Part shown: positions 11,040 to 45,838 of the stretch, in pieces
Layout: the number at the start of each line of letters is the position of its first letter
How positions within the stretch are numbered: position 1 is the first letter of the stretch
Position numbers and translations under genes: made by a program
Assembly: GCA_900088475.1 (NCBI GenBank)
Contig: FLMG01000727.1
Location: 1 to 64,000 of the forward strand
Source: Hyphochytrium catenoides
Lineage: Eukaryota > Protista > Hyphochytriomycota
Reading direction: 5' to 3'
DNA: 64,000 nucleotides
Notes under the pieces: generated by a model
The model's input: only the letters and a program-made list of their open reading frames with translations
Database searches by the model: none
Told to the model about the DNA's origin: nothing

Positions 11040-12793
11040 TCAAAGCTCCATAGAAGGCGCCCGGATTGACACAAGCTGCCCAGAGAGGTTGATATAAGAA
11101 GTATGCATTGTCGTCACATGGGCTCGAAGTTGGTCATAGCTCTTGAACTTCATCCGGCATGTTGGACAGGCAAAGTCTTCCTCGATGTCTCGGTCCTGTA
11201 GAAGATAATCACTGTCGACGCCTGCCGTATAGCGAGCCTCATCTATGTCAACATCTAAATCGCCAGGGCTGTCAACTTCCACTATGTCTAGCTCCTGACT
11301 GATTCCACGGCCGTTCTGTCCCAAAAGCTGTGAAAGAGGAGGTCGCAATTGAGTTGAACTCTGGTTCGCCTGTGCTCCAGCCCTAGAAGCCTCCTCCCTA
11401 CTGCCGATAGCAAAGAAGTCATTATTCACGCTTACATTGGGCATTGACATCCTCGAATATGGTTGGTTGTCTCTCTCTAACTTTGGAGGTGACATTCGCA
11501 CCGACCCGCGATAAGACGGCTGCCCTGCATCCTGGTGGCCATGTGCAGCATAGTCTTGGGCAGGGGTGAGATGATAGCCATTGCTTTGAGCCCCTCCGCT
11601 CTCTCCACCGGTAATGCTGCTCCTAGATACCTCCCCGTATGTGCCCATTGGCCGGGAATAGGGTGTACTTGTCATAAAATTTGGAGTTGTCTGTCCCAAG
11701 CTATCGGTGCGAGCCACAACTGGTGCGCCCAAGCCTCCAGTTGCCCCAGTATAGGCCATCGAGGACAGGACAGGGTTGTATAGTGAATCAGTGCCGGGAG
11801 CGTGAGCCAGACTGGCATACCGGGTGCTTGGCCGACCGTGAATCTCTGGGTAAGTCGTTTGCGCTGTTACGACAGAAGGTCTAAGTCCAGCACTGGGAGC
11901 AGCATTGGTTGACATGTAGCTGCCATAAGTCGAGCCCATCCGCACCGATTCTCTGGTGCTTTCCCGGCCCAGTATTACTGAGGAAGCTGTAGAGCTCCGG
12001 AAGTCTAAAGGTGATGTCGCTGAGGTTGCGCGTGACGTATCGCGACTGTCTGCTGGATTTACAAACCCGTCGCTCTTCCCGCTCAGTCTCCCACCGCTTG
12101 CGACGGATGACGACGCGCTAGAACCTGAAGACAAAGTGATAGGCACGGCATGAAAAGGAATGATGGTAAACCAGGGCTTGCTGTTGTTTCCTAGAGCAAA
12201 GACTTTGACGTTCCCACTGCCTTCATCCGAAGACGCGACGCCAATGAGGAGATCAGGCCATTGGAACGAGATTAGTGTGAAAGGGGTTTGAGGCGTCAAG
12301 AAGCCAGATTCACTGGTGAATTTGATGAGAAAGACGCCTTTGTTGCTCGTCTTCTGATTATGGCCCCAAGTGCAATACCTAGCCGGAAGCCCAAATGCGA
12401 TAGAGGGAAGCAAAGATTGGGGGCGAACAAATGTGAGGGATCTNNNNNNNNNNNNNNNNNNNNNNNNNNNNNNNNNNNNNNNNNNNNNNNNNNNNNNNNN
12501 NNNNNTCCCTTCAAATAGCGGTCAACATTGAGTGGCATCTGCCGATGTCTAAGGTACACTTTGTCGTTTGGACGGATGCGGTGGTCTCCTGAAAGCGGAT
12601 AGGCTGGCTCTAAGAAGATGACTTGATGTCCATCAATCCCGCCGCCCTCCGGATGTCGAATGAGAATTGGAGGTCCTTCTATCTGTCTGGCACTCAGGAC
12701 CATTGTCCGGTCACAGCTCATCAACCTAATTGGCGCGCCGTACCGGACAAACTCTGAGACAGATGCCATGTGGGGCTGATTGATCTCGGCCAT
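11040..12793 (-). CDS. Hypothetical protein with C-terminal C2H2 zinc finger, long Ser/Gly-rich disordered region and N-terminal beta-rich domain
   Basis: The 457-aa ORF ends in FACPTCRMKFKSYDQLRAHVTTMH. An upstream ORF (MAEINQPH...VRYGAPIRL...DKVYLRH) is separated from it by an N gap. The 5' end and the join across the gap are uncertain. Confidence 0.65.
12444..12505. other. Assembly gap (N run); others at 17679-17692, 31329-31330 and 45082-45201
   Basis: Runs of n in the sequence. Confidence 1.
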
Positions 12794-27796: not shown

Positions 27797-30700
27797 ATGG
27801 CGCTTCCACCCTCACTTGATGTTGGAGTCTATAACCGTATAGTTGCTGCGGTCGAGGTGATGCAGTCCCCGCTAACTCTAGAAAATGAACGACGGGCAGC
27901 ATACGAGGTATATTACTCTAGTGCGAGTTCTTTTGCGGCAGAACCAGCTAAAGACCTCCCTACCCACAACAGGAATTTGAAGCGTTTAAGCGACGAGGCG
28001 ACAGCGCTCAGTACGCGCTCTGGATCTTGACGTCAGCAGGTTCTATATGGCACTATTGTGATTGTTGTTGACTGCACTCTGACTTCGTTCCGTTGCTGGG
28101 GAGTAGACAAACGTGATGCCATCCGCCACTTTGCCCTCCTGGTGTTAGAGGAGCAGCTTAATCAGCGTTGGCGGAACTCCTCTCAGGAACAACACACCTC
28201 CATGCGCCTACAGCTGTTGGAGCTATTCTCCCAAAGCAGCAAGCCTATGCTGGAGGAGAAGCAGTTTATCAAAGAGAAGCTGGTAAAGCTCATTAGTAAT
28301 GTAGCTGAAAGAGAATATCCACAGCACTGGCCTAGCTTTTTTCAAGACATGGGCCGCATATGGACGATGGGAGATACGCAGGCAGAGCTCGTGACTATGG
28401 TACTAAGAAAGTCCTAGTTACCCCCCTCAGTGCTTATTGCTTTTCCATCTCACTGCATGTTTGCTTTTGTCTAAGACGACTTTATTAACTCTAGCTAACT
28501 TTGGGTCTTAGGTTTTTCGGGACATCGCCCAAGACTGTATGTGCAACGAGTTTGCCGCAAATCTGCCGGCTGACCGTCGAAAGGATATTCTGAATGTAGG
28601 GTAGCGTCTGATGGTGCCACTTTGTTCTCCATGACTGACAAACTTCTTGCTCACATTGCACTTCGTTCATTCTTTCCGGTGGTGCTTATGAAGCGGGTTC
28701 TTGACTCTCAGACATCACCATCTAACTGCTCTTGGTCAATAACGTTAATCACATCCAGCTCAACTTCGTGTTTTCCCTCTCACTCTTGCGCAGGCGATGA
28801 ATACGTTTCTCCCGGAATTTCTACCAGGAGTGTATTCCTATTTGCAGTCCCAACACCAGATGTATACCTCAGTCCTCCACTCACCGACTCAGCGCAGCCG
28901 AGATGACTTTCAGAAAAGGTAAACGTGAACTTGGTCTCTCCTCATTCGGGTTCTGGCCGAGAGTGTCTGACACTCCCCCTATAGGTTGCTGTTGATCCGC
29001 GCGATTCTAAGAATGATAGCTGAGTTTGCTGAGTGGGCACCAATAAACCTTCTGTGCGGGTCGGAGATAAACTTTGTGAGGCTCTTCACTATTTTTCTTC
29101 CCGATCCGCATCTTCGTATGGGTAAGACGGACCCTACAGCCACTCCTTCTGCTTCTCTCTTGTTTATTCAGATTCGTGTCTTCCACCTTTCTCTTCACTA
29201 TGATCAAGACCTACTTTTTGTCCTCCTCCTCTGATCGATGCAATATGAGTGTATCCTTTCCTTTCTTTTGCTTCACTAAGACAGTCATGTACTCTTCAGA
29301 GGCTTGTGACTGTCTGCAACGAGTAGCTTCTCGCAGACTAAACACTCTAGACCATCATCCGGTGATTCAAGAGGCCATCCACTCTTTGCTTGTGGTTGCA
29401 CAGAAGGTTCCCCTGGAAGGCTATGAAGATCCAGAGACGCTAACTTTCCACCACAAATATTGTGAGATGTTAGCGCAATGGGGAGAGAAGCATCTAAGTC
29501 AACTTCGCTGCACATCCTCGTCTTCTAACTCTCGAGACGCCGAGTTAGTGTCTAGTTATCTTTCTCTGATGTGTCTCATTCTTCTCCATCCTAGCAGCAG
29601 AGTAGCTGACAGCCAGCTTTCTTTCTGGGCTTCAATCTCTAAAAATGAGGAGCTCTCTTCCTCTTCGGCTCTTGCTCCAATGGTCCCTATTGTGATGTCA
29701 AGGTTGTATGACAAACTGGCCAAGGTCAGGCTGGAAGAAGACTCGCCCTCATCTCTATGTGCTGCGGAAGAGTTCGATGATGTTTACGAGTATCAACAAT
29801 TTTTTGGAACGTTCAAGAGCCGCACAGGGCAGACGTTGAGAGTAATGTGCGCTAAGTGGCCAGTCATCGGCCTTGACCTGGCCCTCTACAAGCTTAAGGA
29901 GGTAATAGCTTCGCATCTGGAGCCTAAGGACGAAGTGACAGCCGAGGGCATAGCTACTCAGGGCTCCAAGGCCGTCCTCGCTCAAGATGCCCTCGCTTAT
30001 TACCTAGATAATCTCCTCCCAGCTGTGCTTGAGGGCAAGCTGGTGAAAGAAAATACCAATTCGTACAGTGCTATCCGGCAAAAGGTCGAGGAGCTTACGA
30101 CTGCCCTACTTGGCGTCAATATCGGTGATCCGGTCCTTCTTCAGCGCTACGTGCAAGCTTTGGCGTCCTTGGTGAAGTTCTACGAGCTAGAACCACGGTA
30201 CCTCACTCCTGCCTTCGAGAGGATCTTCCTATGTGTCTCTTTCGTCCATTCCGCAGATAGGCCGCAGGAAGAGAAAATCCATCAGGAGACGATTAGTTTG
30301 CGTCGGCGGGCTGCCGCCACTCTGGTGCGGTTGAGCAAGGCTGCACCCCAGCTTATGCTTCACTGTGTGCCAGATGTTGGAAATCGCATTCTGTCCCTCA
30401 TCCAGGACGGCGATAGAGTGAAACTTGCGGAAAATGAGAGAGTGACACTTTTGGAGATGCTTGTCGTTATTAGCAACTCATTCCCGCAGCAGGAACAGCA
30501 AGTTGCCTTTCTTGATGACATACTCAGGGACACCATTCAAGAATGGGCTGGAGAGAGCATGAGACAAAACGTCGCAGACCCACAACGCCTTGTCGCAGCT
30601 CTTGGCAATTTTCGGTTTTCTACTCTGGCGGTTGAGCCCTTAGAGTTTCGAGGCGGTGCCTTGTTAAGTCGGGTGCATCATATTGGGAGACGAGTGCAGC

Positions 30701-32887
30701 CTTCCGCACATACCGCTCATCACATCTTCAGACGGTAAGCTATTATGCTCAAAGCAGGCTAGGCCAGAAAAGCACCAGCCCGCTGGGTAGCGGCATAATA
30801 GCCAAGAAAAAGTAGGCAGGATGAGTGATGGTTGGATAAATGAGTGGTGACATGGAGAGAAGGAGTAGCAGGTACAAAGGATGATGCTTAGTAAACAAGA
30901 GTCGTGACGGTTTTATGATGAACAGTTGTGAGTGGCTCTGTTGTCTAATCTCTCCCCCTTCAGCTATTGGCCAACCATCTTGCCGAACGCACTATTGCTA
31001 ATCGGCACTCTTCACCAGCTCTGGAAACCAGATATCCGGCCCTCCCTCTTAGCCCTTGAAAGCGCACGGTGGTTGATGTTCCTGTCAGACGATGAGTTGG
31101 CTCCTCTGCTGGAAGGCAGAGAGCAGATCCAGTTGCCTGCAGAGGGGAAGGATCAACGGATTGGATGTGCACGCTGGATGAAGACGTTCAGACTTACTTG
31201 CTACGAAACTCTGGCGCTCGCAGGTAGAGCTCGTTTCGTATAAGCTTTGCTTGTCTTTCAATCGATATGACCATACGAAGGTTGCATAGCGAATGAACCT
31301 ACACGTTATCATCTGTTCGTGGCTTTTCNNCTTTTCATGGAACATCGCCATTTCAAGCAGTTCGTCCACTTTCTGGTGCGCCCGCTTACCTACAACTGCC
31401 CGGATGAGCATCGCATGGCTGTGCTTAAGCCCTTGTTGACTGTTACCTTTAGTCACGCTGCATTAAGACTTGAGTCAGTCTGGTGCGCAAAGATGGTATG
31501 ACACCGCTATCTATTACTTCTGCCTCCCCCTTAATGGCGCTTGACAATCTAGATGCCTTCTGACCTGCACGGAGATTGAGTTCGTTGTCATGTGCCTTTT
31601 ATCTCTCAGAATCCCTCTTGTTTGCAACTATAAGTTACACTCTCTCTGTCGATGCAGCCTGGCGCTGTGATCACTGACGAAAGGCGGGCGGAGCAGCTGC
31701 ATTGGCAATCCATTATCCCCGGCTTAGACCCTGCTCTGGGTGAGGTGGTCCAAGAGGGGATTGTGAGAGATCTTTCCCGGATCATCATGGACTTTCTTCA
31801 CAGCATTCTCGCATTTTTCGTCCCAGAGGGAGACGACAAGGCCGAAACCTCATCGAAGAATTTTCTTCATCTGGAAGCTGTCCGTCACTTCGTTTTGTTT
31901 TCCCAGGAGGAGCTGTCTGGATCCCTCATGATGTTGCTTCTTACCTCATTACGTATTCCAGACACCTACTGCTGTCGTAAGGCGGTTTCAATATGTTCGG
32001 CAATTCTTAGTACTCTTTCCAGCTCTGGGCCTTCGACTCCTCAGTCCAGCAATGTTGGGTTGGGCCAAATTTCATCTTCGCCAGAAGCAGGGAAGCAGAC
32101 GGTAGGGATAGAATGGCTGACGAAGTACCAGTTGGTCTTCGCCCGGGATGTTCTAAGCACCGCGGTGCGACTCTTGCTGGCAGGTGAGGCATAGAGAGTG
32201 AGTCAAGCTTCTTAAGAGTGGAGGTGTGGTTCATTCTATCGAATGGAAAGCTAACTGTCGCTCTTTCCTTACCCTCTTCCAATATGTTCTTGTGTCTTCC
32301 TCTATGTACCTCTCTTTCCTAAGGTTCTTTGGCACACTATCTTTCCTATTCTCTTAATGGCTGCTACTACTTCTGTTCTTCCTAACAATGACTATGACGA
32401 CCCTAATGACGCAGACGACCTTCCTCATGTCGAGGACTCAAGCTTACAATGGCAGATTGTCACTCTAGTGAAGTCCATCTACTGCCGTTTCAGTCTGGGT
32501 CTGCTGGAAGAAAAAGAGAAAAAAGATGTCAACTCCTCCACACCCAGTTCCCTTCCGCTGAAAAAGGAAGTGGACCCTAGTCGCATCCTATTCCTCTCTC
32601 TGCCTGGAGTGACCGAGGAGGTTTTAGACAAACTGGATAGGCAGCTAAAGGAAGAACATACAGAAAGGGCCCGAAGACTGCTTGTCAAAGATTTTCTTCA
32701 AGATGCCGCAAGTAGGCTTAGGCAAGAGGAGAAGGCGGGAGGTGAGTCCATTTTGAAGAAGAAGAGCTACAAGGTGGACAGCCTTCCACCTTACCTTCGC
32801 TCGAAGAAGGGAACACCTCCATCATCGTCTTCTATATGGCAAGCAGGAGACGTATCCGTAGGGTCCCTCTTTGACACTGCCCACTAG
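27797..32887 (+). CDS. XPO5: Exportin-5 (HASTY/Msn5 family); multi-exon
   Basis: RIVAAVEVMQSP...ERRAAYE|EFEAFK, IRHFALLVLEEQLNQRW, EKQFIKEKLVKLISNVAEREYPQHWP, RRKDILN, EEFDDVYEYQQFF, LRRRAAATLVRLSK, ERVTLLEMLVVISN, MEHRHFKQFVH. These are importin-beta N, Xpo1 and exportin-5 family features. Confidence 0.88.
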
Positions 32888-39786: not shown

Positions 39787-40841
39787 AATGGACAACAGAT
39801 AGTCAGTATGGCCCTGTGCTAAGTTGCACTCAGCTTCGGCACTTACTGAACCGGATACTAAGCATAGAAAATTATCGTTTATACTTCAACAATGACTAGC
39901 ATAGGGTCTAGTACATGATGTTAGGGGAAATACCAGACATTATTGGAGTGAGCCTCATGGTAGAAGCTGCCAACGACGCTGTCGAGGGAATGAAGCGGTC
40001 TCTGGACTTCACCACTCGTCCCCTTTCAACTGCACTCATCATCTACTTCATCCCTTTCGCTCTTCCCCTCTTCCACTGCCCTAAGCGATGTTTGTCCTAG
40101 AAAAGACTCAGATACACTTCCAACAATATGGAGCTGGATAGTGTATAAAAGAGAAAAGGAACGATAAGACTAGTAGGTATCTGTGATCATGAAGTACGAC
40201 AAAGAAAGGCTTCTTTCAGCAAGCAAGAGAGAAGGAAGGAAAGAGTAAAACCGAGTAGTAGCGAGACACGAAGGCACAGAGATAGAGAGGCGAAGGGCGA
40301 GGACGAGGAAGGCGTCAGGAGCCAAGCCATAAAGAGGTCGTCGTAGGCTGGCAGCGAGGGCAGGCCGCTGGGCCATCAAGCGGTGTAGGATCCCTAAGAG
40401 CCTTCGCCTTTGTAGAACCAGACCAACCAAACACCAGAATGTAACGGATTCCTGGGTGACGGCGTTAAGAATTATGTACCGGAATTTACTTTCTATACCG
40501 GAGGGAGCTCTTCTGATCACGAATACTCCCAACGTCCTCCACCCACCGATGAAGATCCTAACTGTCATAGTTCCAAACCGATAAGCCTTAAACTACCTAC
40601 CCATCCACTATTACTCCAGGGGGAGGCCTCAAAGAGAAATCATTCGCATCCCAATTCTGAAGATTTGAGGTCTCCGTCGCACGCCTCCCGTCGAAGAAAT
40701 GTTTACTCTCCTCCATCTGGCCTTCCTAGTTCTCTGGAGCTAGTGGTCAGCAGGGACTCAGTCAGTCTCATACATCAGAGTCTCTCTCAAACTTGACTCT
40801 CCAAGGATCGCGGCTAGTGGTGTTTTGATAATACTCTAATA

Positions 40842-43800
40842 ATGGCTAAGGGGAAGATTGCGAAGGCTGGAAGGCGTCGGGAGGCTAGTGCTATACCGGC
40901 CCCTGGAGCGTTAGGTACCACCGTCGAATTTCTGACGTTGGATGCCATTCATGAGAAGCTGCGTCATCTGCTTCCCTCGGGTGAATTTGTTCCCGACAGT
41001 ACCCATATTGAGTGGATGTTGGGTAACAACATCCTTTTCGCAAGAAAACGATACAATGACCCTCACTGGCTGGTCGTTTCTCCAATGAGGAGATGACTGC
41101 TAAGCTCTTAGCCAGCATTATTCCCAAAGAGTCACTGCGCGAGCTTCATTATAGGGCTGACGTCCTTGAAGATCCGGCTGCGATGCTTGCTCTGGGTGAC
41201 TGCTACTACATGAAGCTAAAATGGCTTCCAGACAGGGATATCGTCCGCGGCAATACTTATACCCATCAGGCTGCGATGCTTGGCAACCCTGAGGCAATGA
41301 CACACGTGGCCTTTCTGACACATATCGCAATTAACACAATGCTTCAGCCGGTAAAGTACATGGCACTAACGTAGGGGTACTGTTATTCCTGGACTCTTCT
41401 ACTCTCCTCAACCCGCTCAGCCAACCGTCAAATCGTATGTCTCGTCTTCCTATAGCCCGGTGTTGCCTCTATCGTAATGAGACGCTTATTGTTATGAAAT
41501 CGTCTTCCTCACCCACTCTGCGTTTCTTCTTTACATCTTTGACGTGTGACATGGAGCTTCCTGCTGTTTTTGACTTCGATCGTGGTCTTCGCGTTCTCAC
41601 GGGCCTCGTTATGCCTTTCTCGTGATATAGGGCCTTCTTCCCCACTCAAACGAAGCTCTTGATCCAATACCACCTGCTTGGCGATTGCACCCGGAAGTCC
41701 GCAGGCATATGGAAGATATGTGGGGGTATTTGGAACACGCTGCGGCAGCTAACTGGATCTCTCCATTCCTGCTAAGAGAAACCCAGCAGGCCATCAGGAT
41801 GGGCTCTTGGACCCCGAGCCCTAAAATCATGCAGATAATGGCGCAACGCCAGCGAGAGGTGGAGGAGGAGAAGGAAGTGGCACAGCGAAAACACATTCAT
41901 CGCTGTTCGAACACGGGTTGTACCTTAAGGGCTGACAACACCGCGAACATGAAGACCTGCTCTAGGTGTCGCAATGCAAAGTATTGTTCAAAAGCATGTC
42001 AGCTAGCCCATTGGAGGGCCGGACATAAACGAGAGTGCAAACCGGCCTTGACAAACAGTGAAGAGAGGCACGTCAATACTTCCATAAGCAGCTCAAGAGG
42101 TTCTGAAGAAGAGAATAGCGAAATGAAAGCAGAACATAGCGATGACGAAGATGACATTCTCCTCTCAAAGCCTGGCTCAAGTATGATGTCAATAAACCTG
42201 GCGAACGGCCAGAAAATGGATCTTCGATCTACCACCATGGACTTAGGAGCTCTGCGGAACGCGCTAAAGAGAGAAGATACAGAAGCTCATCGTCGGCGCA
42301 TAGAGTCGAGGACGCGACTCCAACAAAGCGGGGCGTTGAATGTGTCCGTCCAGGATCTTCAGGATCATGCGGAACTGGAGATAGAAAGAGCGCATTACTC
42401 TCGAGCAGCTCGCTCGCTGACGTTCGCCATAGATAAGCTTCATGTGGACAATCCCGTGTACGGAGTGAATAGTGATGAGCGTAAGCAATACGCGAAGTTG
42501 CTCCTTCGGCGGGCTTGGTGCAACCTGAAGGCTGCCGAGGCGTGTCGATCAATTCCCCTAGTTGATGTAGTGATAGAGGATTGCATCTTCGTCCTCCACA
42601 CTGGGACGTTTGAAGCGAAGGATCTCTCAGAGAAAGCGTTGGCTGAGTTCCGAAGTATTGAAGAGGAAGGTGAAAAGTTGCTGAAGACCCTACAGAGAGA
42701 GGAGAGTGAAATGTTAACGGACAGTCCAAAGGAGGCACCGGAAGAATGCTTGGAAACGAAGACTGAAGAGACTAGTCGGTTGAATGGTGAACAATATCAC
42801 GAAGTAGTAGTCGAGGAATCCTCCTTGGACTCTTCCTACAATGATGGTCAGGCCCAAAGCGCGGCTTTGGCTGTACGACGTGTAGGACGGCGTGGTGACA
42901 GATTGCAGAGGGAGAGAGAGAGGAGACGAAGGCGGCAACAAGAGGAACGAAGACTGCAGCGTCGTAACGCCAGTAGTAGTCCTGGCGGAATGGCGAGACA
43001 AGAGAGACTTAAAGCGGTGTTCCCAGCTGAAGAGGAAGAAGATTTGAAGGACTTGGACATGATAAGCTGCCTGGACATTGCGGCTGCAGGTTGTGCCATC
43101 AATGCCTCAAGCAATGAGGAGTGCTGTCCCATCTGCCAGACAGAATGGGGCCAGTTTATAGAGCCTTCCCTAGCAGTCGTCCTTCCGTGTGGCCATGCAC
43201 TCTGTGCGTCTTGCCTTTCGCGCTTCTACGCTGAGTGTCAAAAGCCATTGGATAGTGATTATGCCGGAGATGATGCCTACACGTTCTTTTCCTGCACCAT
43301 TTGTCGAAGACGCCTACCTCGTCGCCTGCTGGAAGAAATGGCTGCCATTGTAGTAGAGCAGCAGCTGGTAAACTCCTTCTCCTTACTCTCAAACCATCTA
43401 CCGGTCAGCGTGATAGAAAGAGAGCGGTTGCTCCAACACTTGTTGGTGCAGCACTCCTTCGATGTGGTCAAGGTGGAGGATGTGCTATTTAATATGCTTG
43501 GGCTGCTTACCGACCCGAATACTAGCTCCGAGCTGACCACTGAGGATAAGCAGGAATTCTATCAGATCGCCCGCGCACCTGTGCAGAAGCTTCAGGATGA
43601 GTATGTGCAGCTTCGCCAGAAGCTATCTAGTGTCCTGGACACAAGCACCAGAAGCTGGAAGCTCAAGTATAAGAAGCTTACGAACCTTCGTCATCGGCTG
43701 GCTGAAGCGCGTCTGAATGCCGCTAAGGATATCTTTGAGCGGATGAACAATGCAGGAGGTGAGGGAATGGGCAGGCTGGAAGAGGATAGAGAAACGGGTT

Positions 43801-44108
43801 GTGTGAAAGGAGTGCGAGACATCCACGTCGACCTTCATGGGCTGCATGTAAGGGAGGCTAAGGAGATACTACTGGAGTTTGTCCTCCCAATTCTCCCTGT
43901 GGTCCGGAAGGTCGTTCTTATCACCGGCAGAGGTGCTCACAGTGAGGCAGGCGTAGGTGTGCTGAAGCCGGCCTTAAAAGAATTTGTGAGAAACTTTGAG
44001 GCCGAGTGCAACAGTGACGAGCTGCACAAGCTCCTGGGACAGCGGCTTGTCTGTGAGGATGTCATGCGGAATGATGGACTTTTAAAAGTTCGACTGGCCG
44101 AGTGCTGA
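40842..44108 (+). CDS. Sel1-like repeat / MYND finger / TPR / RING finger / CUE-like / DUF1771-like / Smr multidomain protein (~965 aa, 3 exons)
   Basis: Exons 40842-41022, 41112-41350 and 41631-44108 join in frame. Sel1: DPAAMLALGDCYY...QAAMLGNPEAM. MYND: CSNTGC...CSRCRNAKYCSKACQLAHWRAGHKREC. TPR-like: YSRAARSLTFAI...LLLRRAWCNLK. RING: CPIC...LPCGHALCASC...CTICR. Smr: VDLHGLHVREA...LITGRGAHS...LKPALKEF...NDGLLKVRL. Confidence 0.9.
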
Positions 44109-44243
44109 CCCTCGTGGTAGATGTGGAACGCTGCGTGTCTATTAGAGCATAAAGCCCCTCAAGATTATGGCAAGGACTGTCAATTGATAAATAGAACTCT
44201 TCGTCATATCACAGCGAACTGGCAGTCTGGCTGTCCCGTTTGT

Positions 44244-44300
44244 TTCATTGACTTAGGAACATGCTTCATTGACTTGAAAAAGATGCTTCATTGACTTAGA
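44244..44300. repeat. Short tandem repeat, 3 copies of TTCATTGACTT at 21-22 bp spacing
   Basis: Copies at 44244, 44265 and 44287, downstream of the RING-Smr gene. Confidence 0.85.
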
Positions 44301-45838
44301 AAGACAGAAAAAGAAAAGAAGGGCTGAGTCCTTTCTTAGATAAAGCAGGGTCAAAATGAAGACAGTTGAGACCAGAAAGGAGAGGCATTTTAGTCTCTCG
44401 TGGCCAGTGGAGCCCACCCCGTTTGTCCCTTTTCCTATTGTCAGAGTAGTAAGTTGGCTCCTAATCTCTCCTCCATCTCAACCCCGAGTACCGCTGTTGC
44501 CATCAAGGAAGGTAAGGGGTTCTGTCAAACCCAACTTCCCCGCTGCTCTGAGGAAAAGAGTGACCTCTATTACCACTGCTTAACTGGCAGCCGCAAAGGG
44601 CATGTGTCACTCCTACTTCCGCATCGAGTAAGAGAGATACGTATATGGTGAGATGGCTTTCAGTCTTGAAGTGCGAAGCTGTTGGGCTTGTGGCCCTTGT
44701 GTTCCCTGCTATAAGGACCATAAAAGCCGCAAGCGACATTGATTCGGGCACGGGGATCAAAGAATTTGAAGAACCAAACAGGACGAAGCACTTGGAACCT
44801 GTGAGAGCGCGATAGGCTTTGCCGAGCGGTAGCCTATCCGTACGAAGCTGAGTGCTCAACAAACTTTATAATAAGAACTCTGGCCGACCTCTCCAAGAAG
44901 CTCAGCAGAATCCGCCAGACCTTGACTGTCATAAGGGGAGGAGGCGTCTGAGCTCGGAGCTCAGAGCTCGGAGATGGAAGATTGGCAAGTGGCTAAGAAA
45001 GAGCTCACAGATGGTCTCTGAGTACTGGGGTAGGTCTGAAGTGAGGCACGTTCTTGAAAAGGAGAAGGGGTAAAACGCACTNNNNNNNNNNNNNNNNNNN
45101 NNNNNNNNNNNNNNNNNNNNNNNNNNNNNNNNNNNNNNNNNNNNNNNNNNNNNNNNNNNNNNNNNNNNNNNNNNNNNNNNNNNNNNNNNNNNNNNNNNNN
45201 NCACACTCTCTCTCTCTTCTGCCTCTTTCTTTCTGGTCTCTCTCACCTCTCACCTCGCTCTAGACTCGAGGAACTATTCTGCGGCGTTACCCATCGGACC
45301 TCACTCCTCTCTTTCTTCTCCTCATCGGCATCGACGGGGTAGGAACTAGTACATCTCTCTTGCAGACCAGCTTGCAAGCAACAGCTTCTTTCTCCTTCGT
45401 CCGTCTTATGTTCCCATCGTTCTCAATCTCTCTATAAACTCATCTCGGTCCTTGGCTGGGCTGGAGTAAAAAACCGGGCCCCGGGACAGCGACCGCTACG
45501 CATCTGCTCACCCGCTTGCGCCTCAAACCTCTCTATTCTTAACTTCTTCTAGCTTCTATCGCTTGTTATCGTGACTCCTCTGCTGTCCTGACCCTCCATG
45601 TAAAGCTCCCTTCACATATATCGAGTCAGAGCGAAGAAGAACTTTGGCCACAGCTCTATACAAACGACAAGCTCTTCTTCATCACCTCGCCACCGATTCA
45701 TTTCTTCTTCAGAGTCTTCCGGTACTCAGTGATCTCTTCCTTGTAATCTCTCTCTCTCTCTCTCCTCTCTTTTTTTCTTTCTCTAGCTATCTATCTCCGG
45801 CGCCATCTGTCCACTGGCTGTTCCCCGTTTCGAGAAGG

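Follow-up and report, generated by a model that had tools for sequence, protein, structure and literature searches.

A predicted protein of Hyphochytrium catenoides joins a RING finger to an N4BP2/Cue2-type Smr domain and belongs to a family found in distant eukaryotes

No-go decay in yeast, worms and humans divides ubiquitin marking and mRNA cutting between separate proteins, and the recruitment of the nuclease in this pathway is still debated. Cue2 requires D348, H350 and R402 for cleavage on collided ribosomes (PMC6598757). NONU-1 requires its DxH motif for nonstop and no-go decay, and N4BP2 is treated as its human homologue (10.1101/674358). The Smr domains of bacterial SmrB and MutS2 are reported to be recruited to ribosome collisions; B. 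subtilis MutS2 is reported to bind collisions through its SMR and KOW domains without cleaving the mRNA (PMC10897456). The gene analyzed here lies in a stretch of 64,000 nucleotides of Hyphochytrium catenoides (GenBank assembly GCA_900088475.1, contig FLMG01000727.1, positions 1 to 64,000 of the forward strand), referred to below as the window. Its predicted product carries a RING finger and an Smr domain in one chain.

The occurrence of NONU-1 homologues fused to "UIM, UBL, and RING" domains was mentioned in one sentence by Glover et al. 2019 (10.1101/674358, section 11). The present RING-Smr family is very probably among the fusions listed there, and as an idea a RING fused to a NONU-1-type Smr domain is not new. 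The paper does not give the full architecture, distribution or function of the family, and no study describing the RING-Smr family, its TPR, its distribution or its function was found in the literature. A preliminary description of the gene, made from the sequence alone, had suggested an undescribed ribosome-rescue or antiviral RNase system; "undescribed" is true only in part, since RING had already been listed among the Smr fusions, although no functional study was found.

The main open reading frame (ORF) extended from 41685 to 44108 (+) and encoded 807 aa, with the frame open from 41577 (ORF list and translation). The preliminary description had placed a MYND finger at about 41904–42038, a C3HC4 RING at about 43122–43310 and a C-terminal Smr domain with both signature motifs intact, all in one uninterrupted exon from MYND to Smr. 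This layout was borne out by the ORF and by Pfam, in which each of the three domains scored above its cut-off.

The Smr domain, starting at ORF aa 715, scored 28.4–30 bits with Pfam PF01713 against a cut-off of 25.7, and the motifs DLHG and ITGRGAHS were both present. A profile search of PDB matched the last helix of the preceding hairpin together with the Smr domain to the Smr domain of N4BP2 with an E value (E) of 1.8e-9. The first structural model was built from 4 sequences, with a middling predicted local distance difference test score (pLDDT) of 68 overall and around 80 in the Smr part; it showed, in order, the RING, four short helices, two long helices and the Smr domain. Foldseek comparison of the Smr part of this 4-sequence model with the N4BP2 structures 2vkc, 2d9i and 3fau gave a probability of 1.0, template modelling (TM) scores by target of 0.58–0.75 and E from 5e-3 to 0.2, in line with an Smr (IF3-C-like) fold. 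The N4BP2 Smr domain and assorted RINGs were the only significant-looking fold matches of the model, and E. coli YdaL was only a weak fold match to the Smr part. In an alignment of 81 family modules (module numbering), D247, H249 and G279 were present in all 81 sequences and G281 in 80; position 280 was R or K in 61 and H283 was kept in 76. Pfam recognized the Smr domain at E up to 0.01 in 78 of 81 relatives. The results indicated that the Smr domain of the window is nearest to that of N4BP2 and keeps the residues needed for cleavage in Cue2 and NONU-1.

The RING was matched by Pfam at ORF aa 481–540 (nt 43125–43304), with 26.4–27.9 bits for zf-RING_UBOX (cut-off 25.2) and 22.2 bits for zf-C3HC4 (cut-off 21). 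Its ligand spacing was C12-x2-C15-x17-C33-x-H35-x2-C38-x2-C41-x26-C68-x2-C71, consistent with the C3HC4 pattern C-x2-C-x(9-39)-C-x(1-3)-H-x(2-3)-C-x2-C-x(4-48)-C-x2-C. In the module alignment, six of the zinc ligand positions were kept in all 81 sequences and the other two in 80. Position 14, between the first two cysteines (Ile in the window), was I, V or L in 59 of the 81, and Arg72 was kept in 69. These two positions are presumably the E2-contact and active-RING features of RNF4 and BIRC7. RNF4 was also the best RING match in PDB by profile search (E 1e-7). The features of the RING are consistent with activation of a ubiquitin-conjugating enzyme (E2).

A word-index protein search with the whole ORF returned nothing. 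When the search was limited to aa 470–807, three relatives with the same RING-to-Smr arrangement were found, namely a protein of the chytrid Borealophlyctis nickersoniae (43% identity over 98% of the query) and two proteins from environmental or run assemblies. A profile of four sequences was then scored against 1.84 billion representative proteins and gave 1173 matches with E of 1e-3 or below; for 124 of these, E was 1e-30 or lower. On local re-scanning, 80 of the best 150 matches covered the RING-to-Smr span of the profile. In language-model atlas searches, the matches were confined to generic clusters for MYND and RING (scores up to 0.81 and up to 0.69).

The named members included chytrids (Borealophlyctis, Phlyctochytrium, two species of Geranomyces, Chytridium lagenaria, Rhizophlyctis, Nowakowskiella and Globomyces), stramenopiles (Synura, Tribonema with three paralogues, and an ochromonad), the haptophyte Haptolina, the ichthyosporean Chromosphaera (two proteins) and, as annotated, the rotifer Brachionus (two proteins). 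They were annotated as "hypothetical", "RING-type domain-containing" or "Smr domain-containing", and two relatives were labelled "DNA-nicking Smr family endonuclease" by the Joint Genome Institute (JGI). In a tree of 81 modules, the window sequence fell in a weakly supported clade with chytrids, Synura and the rotifer (82 in the Shimodaira–Hasegawa-like approximate likelihood ratio test, SH-aLRT). Since the tree gives no resolved sister, no claim of gene transfer is made.

Allelic differences were seen along the gene in DNA runs of the same organism. Thirteen of the 23 differences listed for the main exon were synonymous; in the RING-to-Smr module, eight were synonymous and two conservative. 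Because the allelic variants are biased to synonymous changes and the catalytic and ligand residues are near-invariant, the gene is under purifying selection. A gene-model artefact or a decaying pseudogene was considered as a rival explanation. It drew on the frame break between the ORF at 40842 and the Sel1-like exon and on the reads over the gene being DNA only. All conserved domains lie in one 2.4-kb ORF, however, and the same fusion occurs in many genomes, including a chytrid gene (L001, 6001–7683) of 1683 nt, that is 560 codons and a stop, which encodes Sel1, RING and Smr. This explanation is already largely refuted and retains hardly any credibility. The module recurs in at least 80 protein clusters, in agreement with the preliminary description, which had held that the fusion was no gene-model artefact. 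By these comparisons, RING plus N4BP2/Cue2-type Smr is a real single-chain fusion conserved across distant eukaryotes.

The region upstream of the RING differed more among members. Pfam searches of 62 family N-termini found MYND in 15 and Sel1 in 4, and ankyrin, KIX, ARM or RB_B domains were each carried by single members. Since these N-terminal add-ons differ between members, the conserved core is taken to extend from the TPR to the Smr domain. In order, the core consists of a chaperone-class TPR, a basic patch, the RING, a four-helix domain, a helical hairpin and the Smr domain. In the window, the MYND finger matched Pfam PF01753 over ORF aa 79–118 with E 7.4e-9 and 36–38 bits (cut-off 22.7); its first cysteine is aa 74 (nt 41904).

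The TPR of the window matched the TPR of a relative (P0002) by BLASTP with E 7e-4. A family profile, built from 60 members over the 170 residues that precede the module, matched SPAG1 (2.9e-14), CHIP (1.4e-6) and PP5 (1e-5), and also Hop, TOM70, SGT, CNS1, RPAP3 and FKBP8. The profile of the MYND-bearing subfamily of the window alone matched PP5 at E 9.5e-4 and the same TPR set at marginal E values. The TPR upstream of the RING is thus assigned, by profile, to the class that binds the tails of Hsp70 and Hsp90 (SPAG1, CHIP, Hop, PP5). The TPR-like helices of the preliminary description were genuine TPR, of a class that had not been recognized there. The clamp asparagines are, as we take them, those of GN in helix 1 and NRA in TPR2. 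Many relatives keep GN and SNRAxC, for which AH and RRAWC stand in the window and its subfamily. Because the clamp asparagines are replaced, chaperone-tail binding by the TPR copy of the window is doubtful.

The Arg/Glu-rich charged stretch noted earlier was located between the TPR and the RING as a basic patch with 8 K/R in a stretch of 12 aa. At least 7 K/R in 12 aa, within at most 80 aa upstream of the RING, were found in 31 of 68 family members and in none of 68 control segments.

The segment between the RING and the hairpin had been described as CUE/UBA-like. AlphaFold2 modelling of this post-RING linker alone, with 78 sequences, predicted a compact fold of four helices with a pLDDT of 90.9 and a conserved hydrophobic core; L103, L117, L118, F123, V128, L132 and M135 are conserved. 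Pfam found no CUE or UBA domain in the 78 linkers of the family, even with E as high as 10 allowed, and a PDB profile search with the linker returned nothing relevant. In Foldseek searches of PDB, Swiss-Prot and AFDB clusters, all matches had E of 0.2 or more, and TM scores above 0.6 were given only by family members. VIA-align, in a wide search and a second look, gave Z of at most 4.8; by the tool's own note, values below about 13 carry little meaning for helical bundles. An atlas shape search with the domain also gave no significant match. The label "CUE domain" was accordingly rejected on sequence and fold matches alike. Among the weak fold matches, UBXN7, PUX5, PUX16, ETEA UBA-like, EDD UBA bound to ubiquitin and NBR1 UBA recurred, as did the N-terminal domains of HBS1 (HBS1_N); these matches had E above 3 and Z at most 4.8. 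UBA-likeness of the modelled segment is a weak lead and no finding. The domain is predicted to be confidently folded and specific to the family.

A Pfam match to UBZ_FAAP20, a ubiquitin-binding zinc finger, was observed in 7 of the 81 modules (best E 1.2e-6). No extra Cys/His motif outside the RING was found in these modules. The matches probably arise from the final CxxC of the RING together with the helix that follows it, and UBZ_FAAP20 was set aside as a separate motif.

The hairpin had been described as a DUF1771-like helix. Ten hairpin segments gave no match to Pfam DUF1771 (PF08590), even with E values up to 10 allowed, and that name is not supported; the two long helices carry a motif specific to the family, KQxIYxxARxPV. 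The last helix of the hairpin (ARLNAAxDIFxxxN) does align with the helical N-terminal extension of the N4BP2 Smr domain in PDB 2vkc. The conserved residues of the hairpin were K153, Y157, A160, R161, P163, A210 and N219.

The 5' end of the gene was examined for frame, introns and homology. The Sel1-like exon lies in an ORF at 41093–41374 and is followed by a predicted intron with GT at 41351 and AG at 41629–41630, which joins codon 41348–41350 in phase to 41631. The protein read across this intron was colinear with a chytrid RING-Smr protein (P0001). The Sel1-like repeat itself was weak in the window (Pfam PF08238, E 0.051, 14.6 bits against a cut-off of 30.7), and the homologous chytrid segment scored 30.4 bits with Pfam Sel1. 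BLASTP matched the exon to the Sel1-bearing N-terminus of P0001 with E 2e-10. Because this chytrid N-terminus continues into the RING-Smr module, the exon is assigned to the RING-Smr gene. The exon of the Sel1-like repeat noted in the preliminary description is thus supported by homology, and the repeat itself stays below the Pfam cut-off. The four runs over the gene were DNA, without joints, and no RNA run was among those listed.

The start had earlier been placed at 40842, with a product of about 965 aa. No canonical intron linking the 40842 ORF to the Sel1-like exon was found among the GT/AG pairs that were checked by hand for frame, and the ORF had no homology to family N-termini. Because the ORF is off-frame, lacks a joining intron and lacks family homology, the first 70–80 residues of that product are uncertain. 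The 40842 start is not supported; frame, intron and homology point instead to the ATG at 41093 and a product of about 911 aa. In run X3, one allelic contig of low depth carried an extra T after 41062, which would put the 40842 ORF in frame with the sequence from 41093 onward. The insertion falls in the 34-nt span (41060–41093) in which a +1 insertion fuses both frames. Contigs of runs X1 and X2 matched the window at 41062, and X3 is from the same sample as X1. The extra T may reflect heterozygosity for a frameshift in exon 1; alternatively, either of the two versions may contain an error of sequencing or assembly.

Shared with Cue2, NONU-1 and N4BP2 are a C-terminal Smr domain carrying DxH and TG(R/K)G, a preceding helix that aligns with the N-terminal extension of N4BP2, and the place of the Smr domain at the end of a multidomain protein tied to the ubiquitin system. 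The protein differs from them in having no CUE/UBA or P-loop kinase domain detectable by Pfam, and in carrying a RING of its own along with a MYND finger, a TPR of the chaperone class, the family-specific four-helix domain and the hairpin. By its sequence it can be placed as a divergent relative, and no typical member, of this group. Like Hel2/ZNF598, it has a C3HC4 RING and, through the fused Smr domain, a presumed link to translation quality control. Hel2/ZNF598, however, has an N-terminal RING followed by C2H2 zinc fingers, and here the RING is internal and followed by the Smr domain. Pfam found no C2H2 finger with E of 1 or below, and the remaining architecture bears no relation to that of Hel2/ZNF598. 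Because the C2H2 array is absent, membership in Hel2/ZNF598 is excluded, and the protein would be a functional analogue at most. With CHIP/STUB1 it shares a TPR of the same class N-terminal to the ubiquitin ligase (E3) domain, with charged and helical regions around. In contrast to CHIP, it has a RING instead of a U-box, a hairpin after the E3 domain and replaced clamp asparagines, and CHIP has no nuclease. The resemblance to bacterial SmrB and MutS2 lies in the Smr domain, which is reported to be the module that recognizes collided ribosomes in both. Those proteins are bacterial and act without ubiquitin machinery, and the Smr domain of the window is nearer to N4BP2 by sequence.

Our preferred reading, held tentatively, is of an mRNA-cutting enzyme that acts at stalled or collided ribosomes and whose RING at the same time ubiquitinates a target close by. 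A role at the ribosome is inferred from the part that Cue2 and NONU-1 play in no-go and nonstop decay, from the reported recruitment of SmrB and MutS2 to collided ribosomes, and from the N4BP2-like Smr domain of the window with its cleavage residues. The Smr domain would dock on stalled or collided ribosomes and cut mRNA as Cue2, NONU-1 and SmrB do. The RING on the same chain would ubiquitinate something in reach, and candidate targets are a protein of the 40S subunit, the nascent polypeptide and the enzyme itself. Marking and cutting would thereby be linked, and no separate step of recruitment would be needed. Selection of the substrate or partner may fall to the TPR and MYND; in clamp-intact relatives, this partner may be the tail of Hsp70 or Hsp90. 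The four-helix domain would serve as a conserved interaction surface, with ubiquitin as one candidate ligand. The preliminary description had proposed writer, reader and nuclease in one protein; the writer and nuclease parts are consistent with the intact RING ligands and Smr motifs, and the reader part is left without a significant ubiquitin-binding match. The extension of the preferred reading to a self-contained co-translational triage enzyme is doubtful. Such an enzyme would sense failing translation through Smr docking, the TPR or both, ubiquitinate the ribosome or nascent chain and cut the mRNA, replacing the two-protein relay from Hel2 to Cue2, and would represent an ancient pathway lost in the usual model organisms.

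Several points weigh against mRNA cleavage at the ribosome coupled to ubiquitination. The support consists of sequence comparisons, structural models and DNA runs, and no ubiquitin-binding domain was demonstrable by Pfam, PDB profile, Foldseek or VIA-align. The TPR of the window lacks the clamp asparagines, and its chaperone binding is doubtful. The Smr domains of MutS2 and N4BP2/B3bp nick DNA in vitro, MYND fingers and basic patches are common in nuclear proteins too, and two relatives bear the JGI label for DNA nicking. These last points favour a DNA-directed enzyme, in which a nuclear nicking endonuclease and RING ligase would act in repair, recombination or chromatin, with the MYND finger and the basic patch, which resembles a nuclear localization signal and is found upstream of the RING in the 31 of 68 members given above, targeting the nucleus or chromatin. 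In vivo, however, the roles are ribosomal for Cue2 (PMC6598757) and NONU-1 (10.1101/674358) and, reportedly, likewise for SmrB and MutS2. The closest solved relative, N4BP2, is treated as the human homologue of NONU-1 (10.1101/674358), and no DNA-binding domain was detected by Pfam in the window protein or the family N-termini; a DNA-directed enzyme appears unlikely. Unlikely too is a collision-sensing E3, in which the Smr domain would mainly recognize collided ribosomes, the RING would be the effector, as a functional analogue of Hel2/ZNF598, and cleavage would be secondary or absent. The RING is conserved as strongly as the Smr domain, and the B. subtilis MutS2 described above is reported to bind collisions through SMR and KOW without mRNA cleavage (PMC10897456). 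The invariance of D247 and H249 in all 81 sequences and the large retention of R/K280 and H283 argue that catalysis, beyond binding, is selected.

The chaperone-class TPR suggests a CHIP-like logic, as an alternative or an addition to the preferred reading. As an alternative, the TPR would sit on Hsp70 or Hsp90, the RING would ubiquitinate the client, and the Smr domain would destroy the client mRNA or another RNA independently of collisions. The family profile matches to SPAG1, CHIP, Hop, PP5, TOM70 and SGT, the order of TPR, charged or helical region and RING, which echoes CHIP, and the GN and SNRAxC clamp positions kept in many relatives are in line with it; but the subfamily of the window lacks the clamp asparagines and its class match is marginal (PP5, 9.5e-4), and this alternative is quite improbable. 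A conflict (anti-viral) effector is very improbable. Section 11 of Glover et al. 2019 (10.1101/674358) can be cited for it, as can the paralogues of some genomes (such as three in Tribonema, and pairs in Chromosphaera and Brachionus) and the variable N-terminal domains. The core, however, evolves slowly and is common to lineages of three eukaryotic supergroups, no signal peptide was noted, the paralogues are few, and nothing in the window ties the gene to a mobile or viral element.

A conserved family that hard-wires a RING to the same nuclease type would offer a natural experiment. It can be asked what the RING targets when tethered to the Smr domain and whether the cut is still ubiquitin-dependent. 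The chaperone-class TPR hints at a tie between the surveillance of protein folding and mRNA decay. The family occurs in chytrids, several algal groups, an ichthyosporean and, as annotated, a rotifer; no named member from the usual model organisms was seen, and this absence may explain why the family is unstudied. The practical value is modest for now. The coordinates of the gene and its predicted domains are given in the table.

Table. Positions of the RING-Smr gene and its predicted parts in the window (nt, window numbering).
Feature	Position	Strand	Remarks
Upstream ORF	40842–41096	+	Coding status uncertain; frame differs from Sel1-like exon
Sel1-like exon	41093–41350	+	ATG at 41093 is the best-supported start; Pfam and BLASTP
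Predicted intron	41351–41630	+	GT..AG, 280 nt, phase 0; from sequence
Main exon	41631–44108	+	Uninterrupted, from upstream of the MYND finger to the stop codon; ORF list and translation
MYND zinc finger	41904–42038	+	ORF aa 74–118; Pfam PF01753
Divergent TPR, Hsp70/Hsp90-binding class	42357–42629	+	About ORF aa 225–315; clamp asparagines replaced
Arg-rich basic patch	42873–42968	+	Between TPR and RING; about ORF aa 397–428
C3HC4 RING finger	43125–43307	+	Module C12–C71 plus Arg72 directly after the last Cys
Family-specific four-helix domain	43314–43508	+	Predicted fold; segment earlier called "CUE-like"
Helical hairpin	43533–43754	+	KQxIYxxARxPV motif; ends in the ARLNAAxDIFxxxN helix packing before Smr
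Smr domain	43818–44105	+	DxH at nt 43830–43838 (ORF D716, H718); TGRG at nt 43923–43934 (ORF aa 747–750)

Some profile matches covered the hairpin-plus-Smr half only (from about position 142), without the RING or another Pfam domain (P0112, P0121, P0124, P0133, P0134, P0137, P0139 and P0150). Either they are incomplete pieces of family proteins, or they represent a sister form that lacks the RING. The lineages of the named members, namely chytrids, chrysophytes, a xanthophyte, a haptophyte and a rotifer, are, as we take them, mostly ones with flagellated or ciliated stages. SPAG1, the best match of the TPR profile, and RPAP3 are presumably co-chaperones of dynein-arm or R2TP assembly, and other ciliary assembly factors carry MYND fingers. 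A link of the family to cilia is possible, as is simple sampling bias.

Elsewhere in the window, Pfam identified an exportin-5 family exon at 29176–30738 (+) (E 6e-44) and, at 11040–12413 (-), an ORF containing a SUZ12-like zinc domain (E 3e-5). Both are ordinary neighbours, uninformative for the RING-Smr gene and with no evident link to it. About 0.9 kb downstream of the gene there is an assembly gap, with unknown bases at about 44990–45200 (X in the ORFs 44929–45246 and 44961–45206).

The DNA runs differed from the window at dozens of sites over 40600–44400 (at least 53, of which 40 are listed), and the X3 contig over 41040–41399 had 8 differences in 360 nt. These differences suggest two fairly divergent haplotypes or strains. 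Runs X4–X7 (two soil metagenomes, a rhizosphere metagenome and an unlabelled run) contained 5–11% of the sampled 31-mers of 42300–44100, and samples of this kind may harbour the organism or a close relative. The unlabelled run (X4) gave one contig on 43524–43744 with zero differences from the window.

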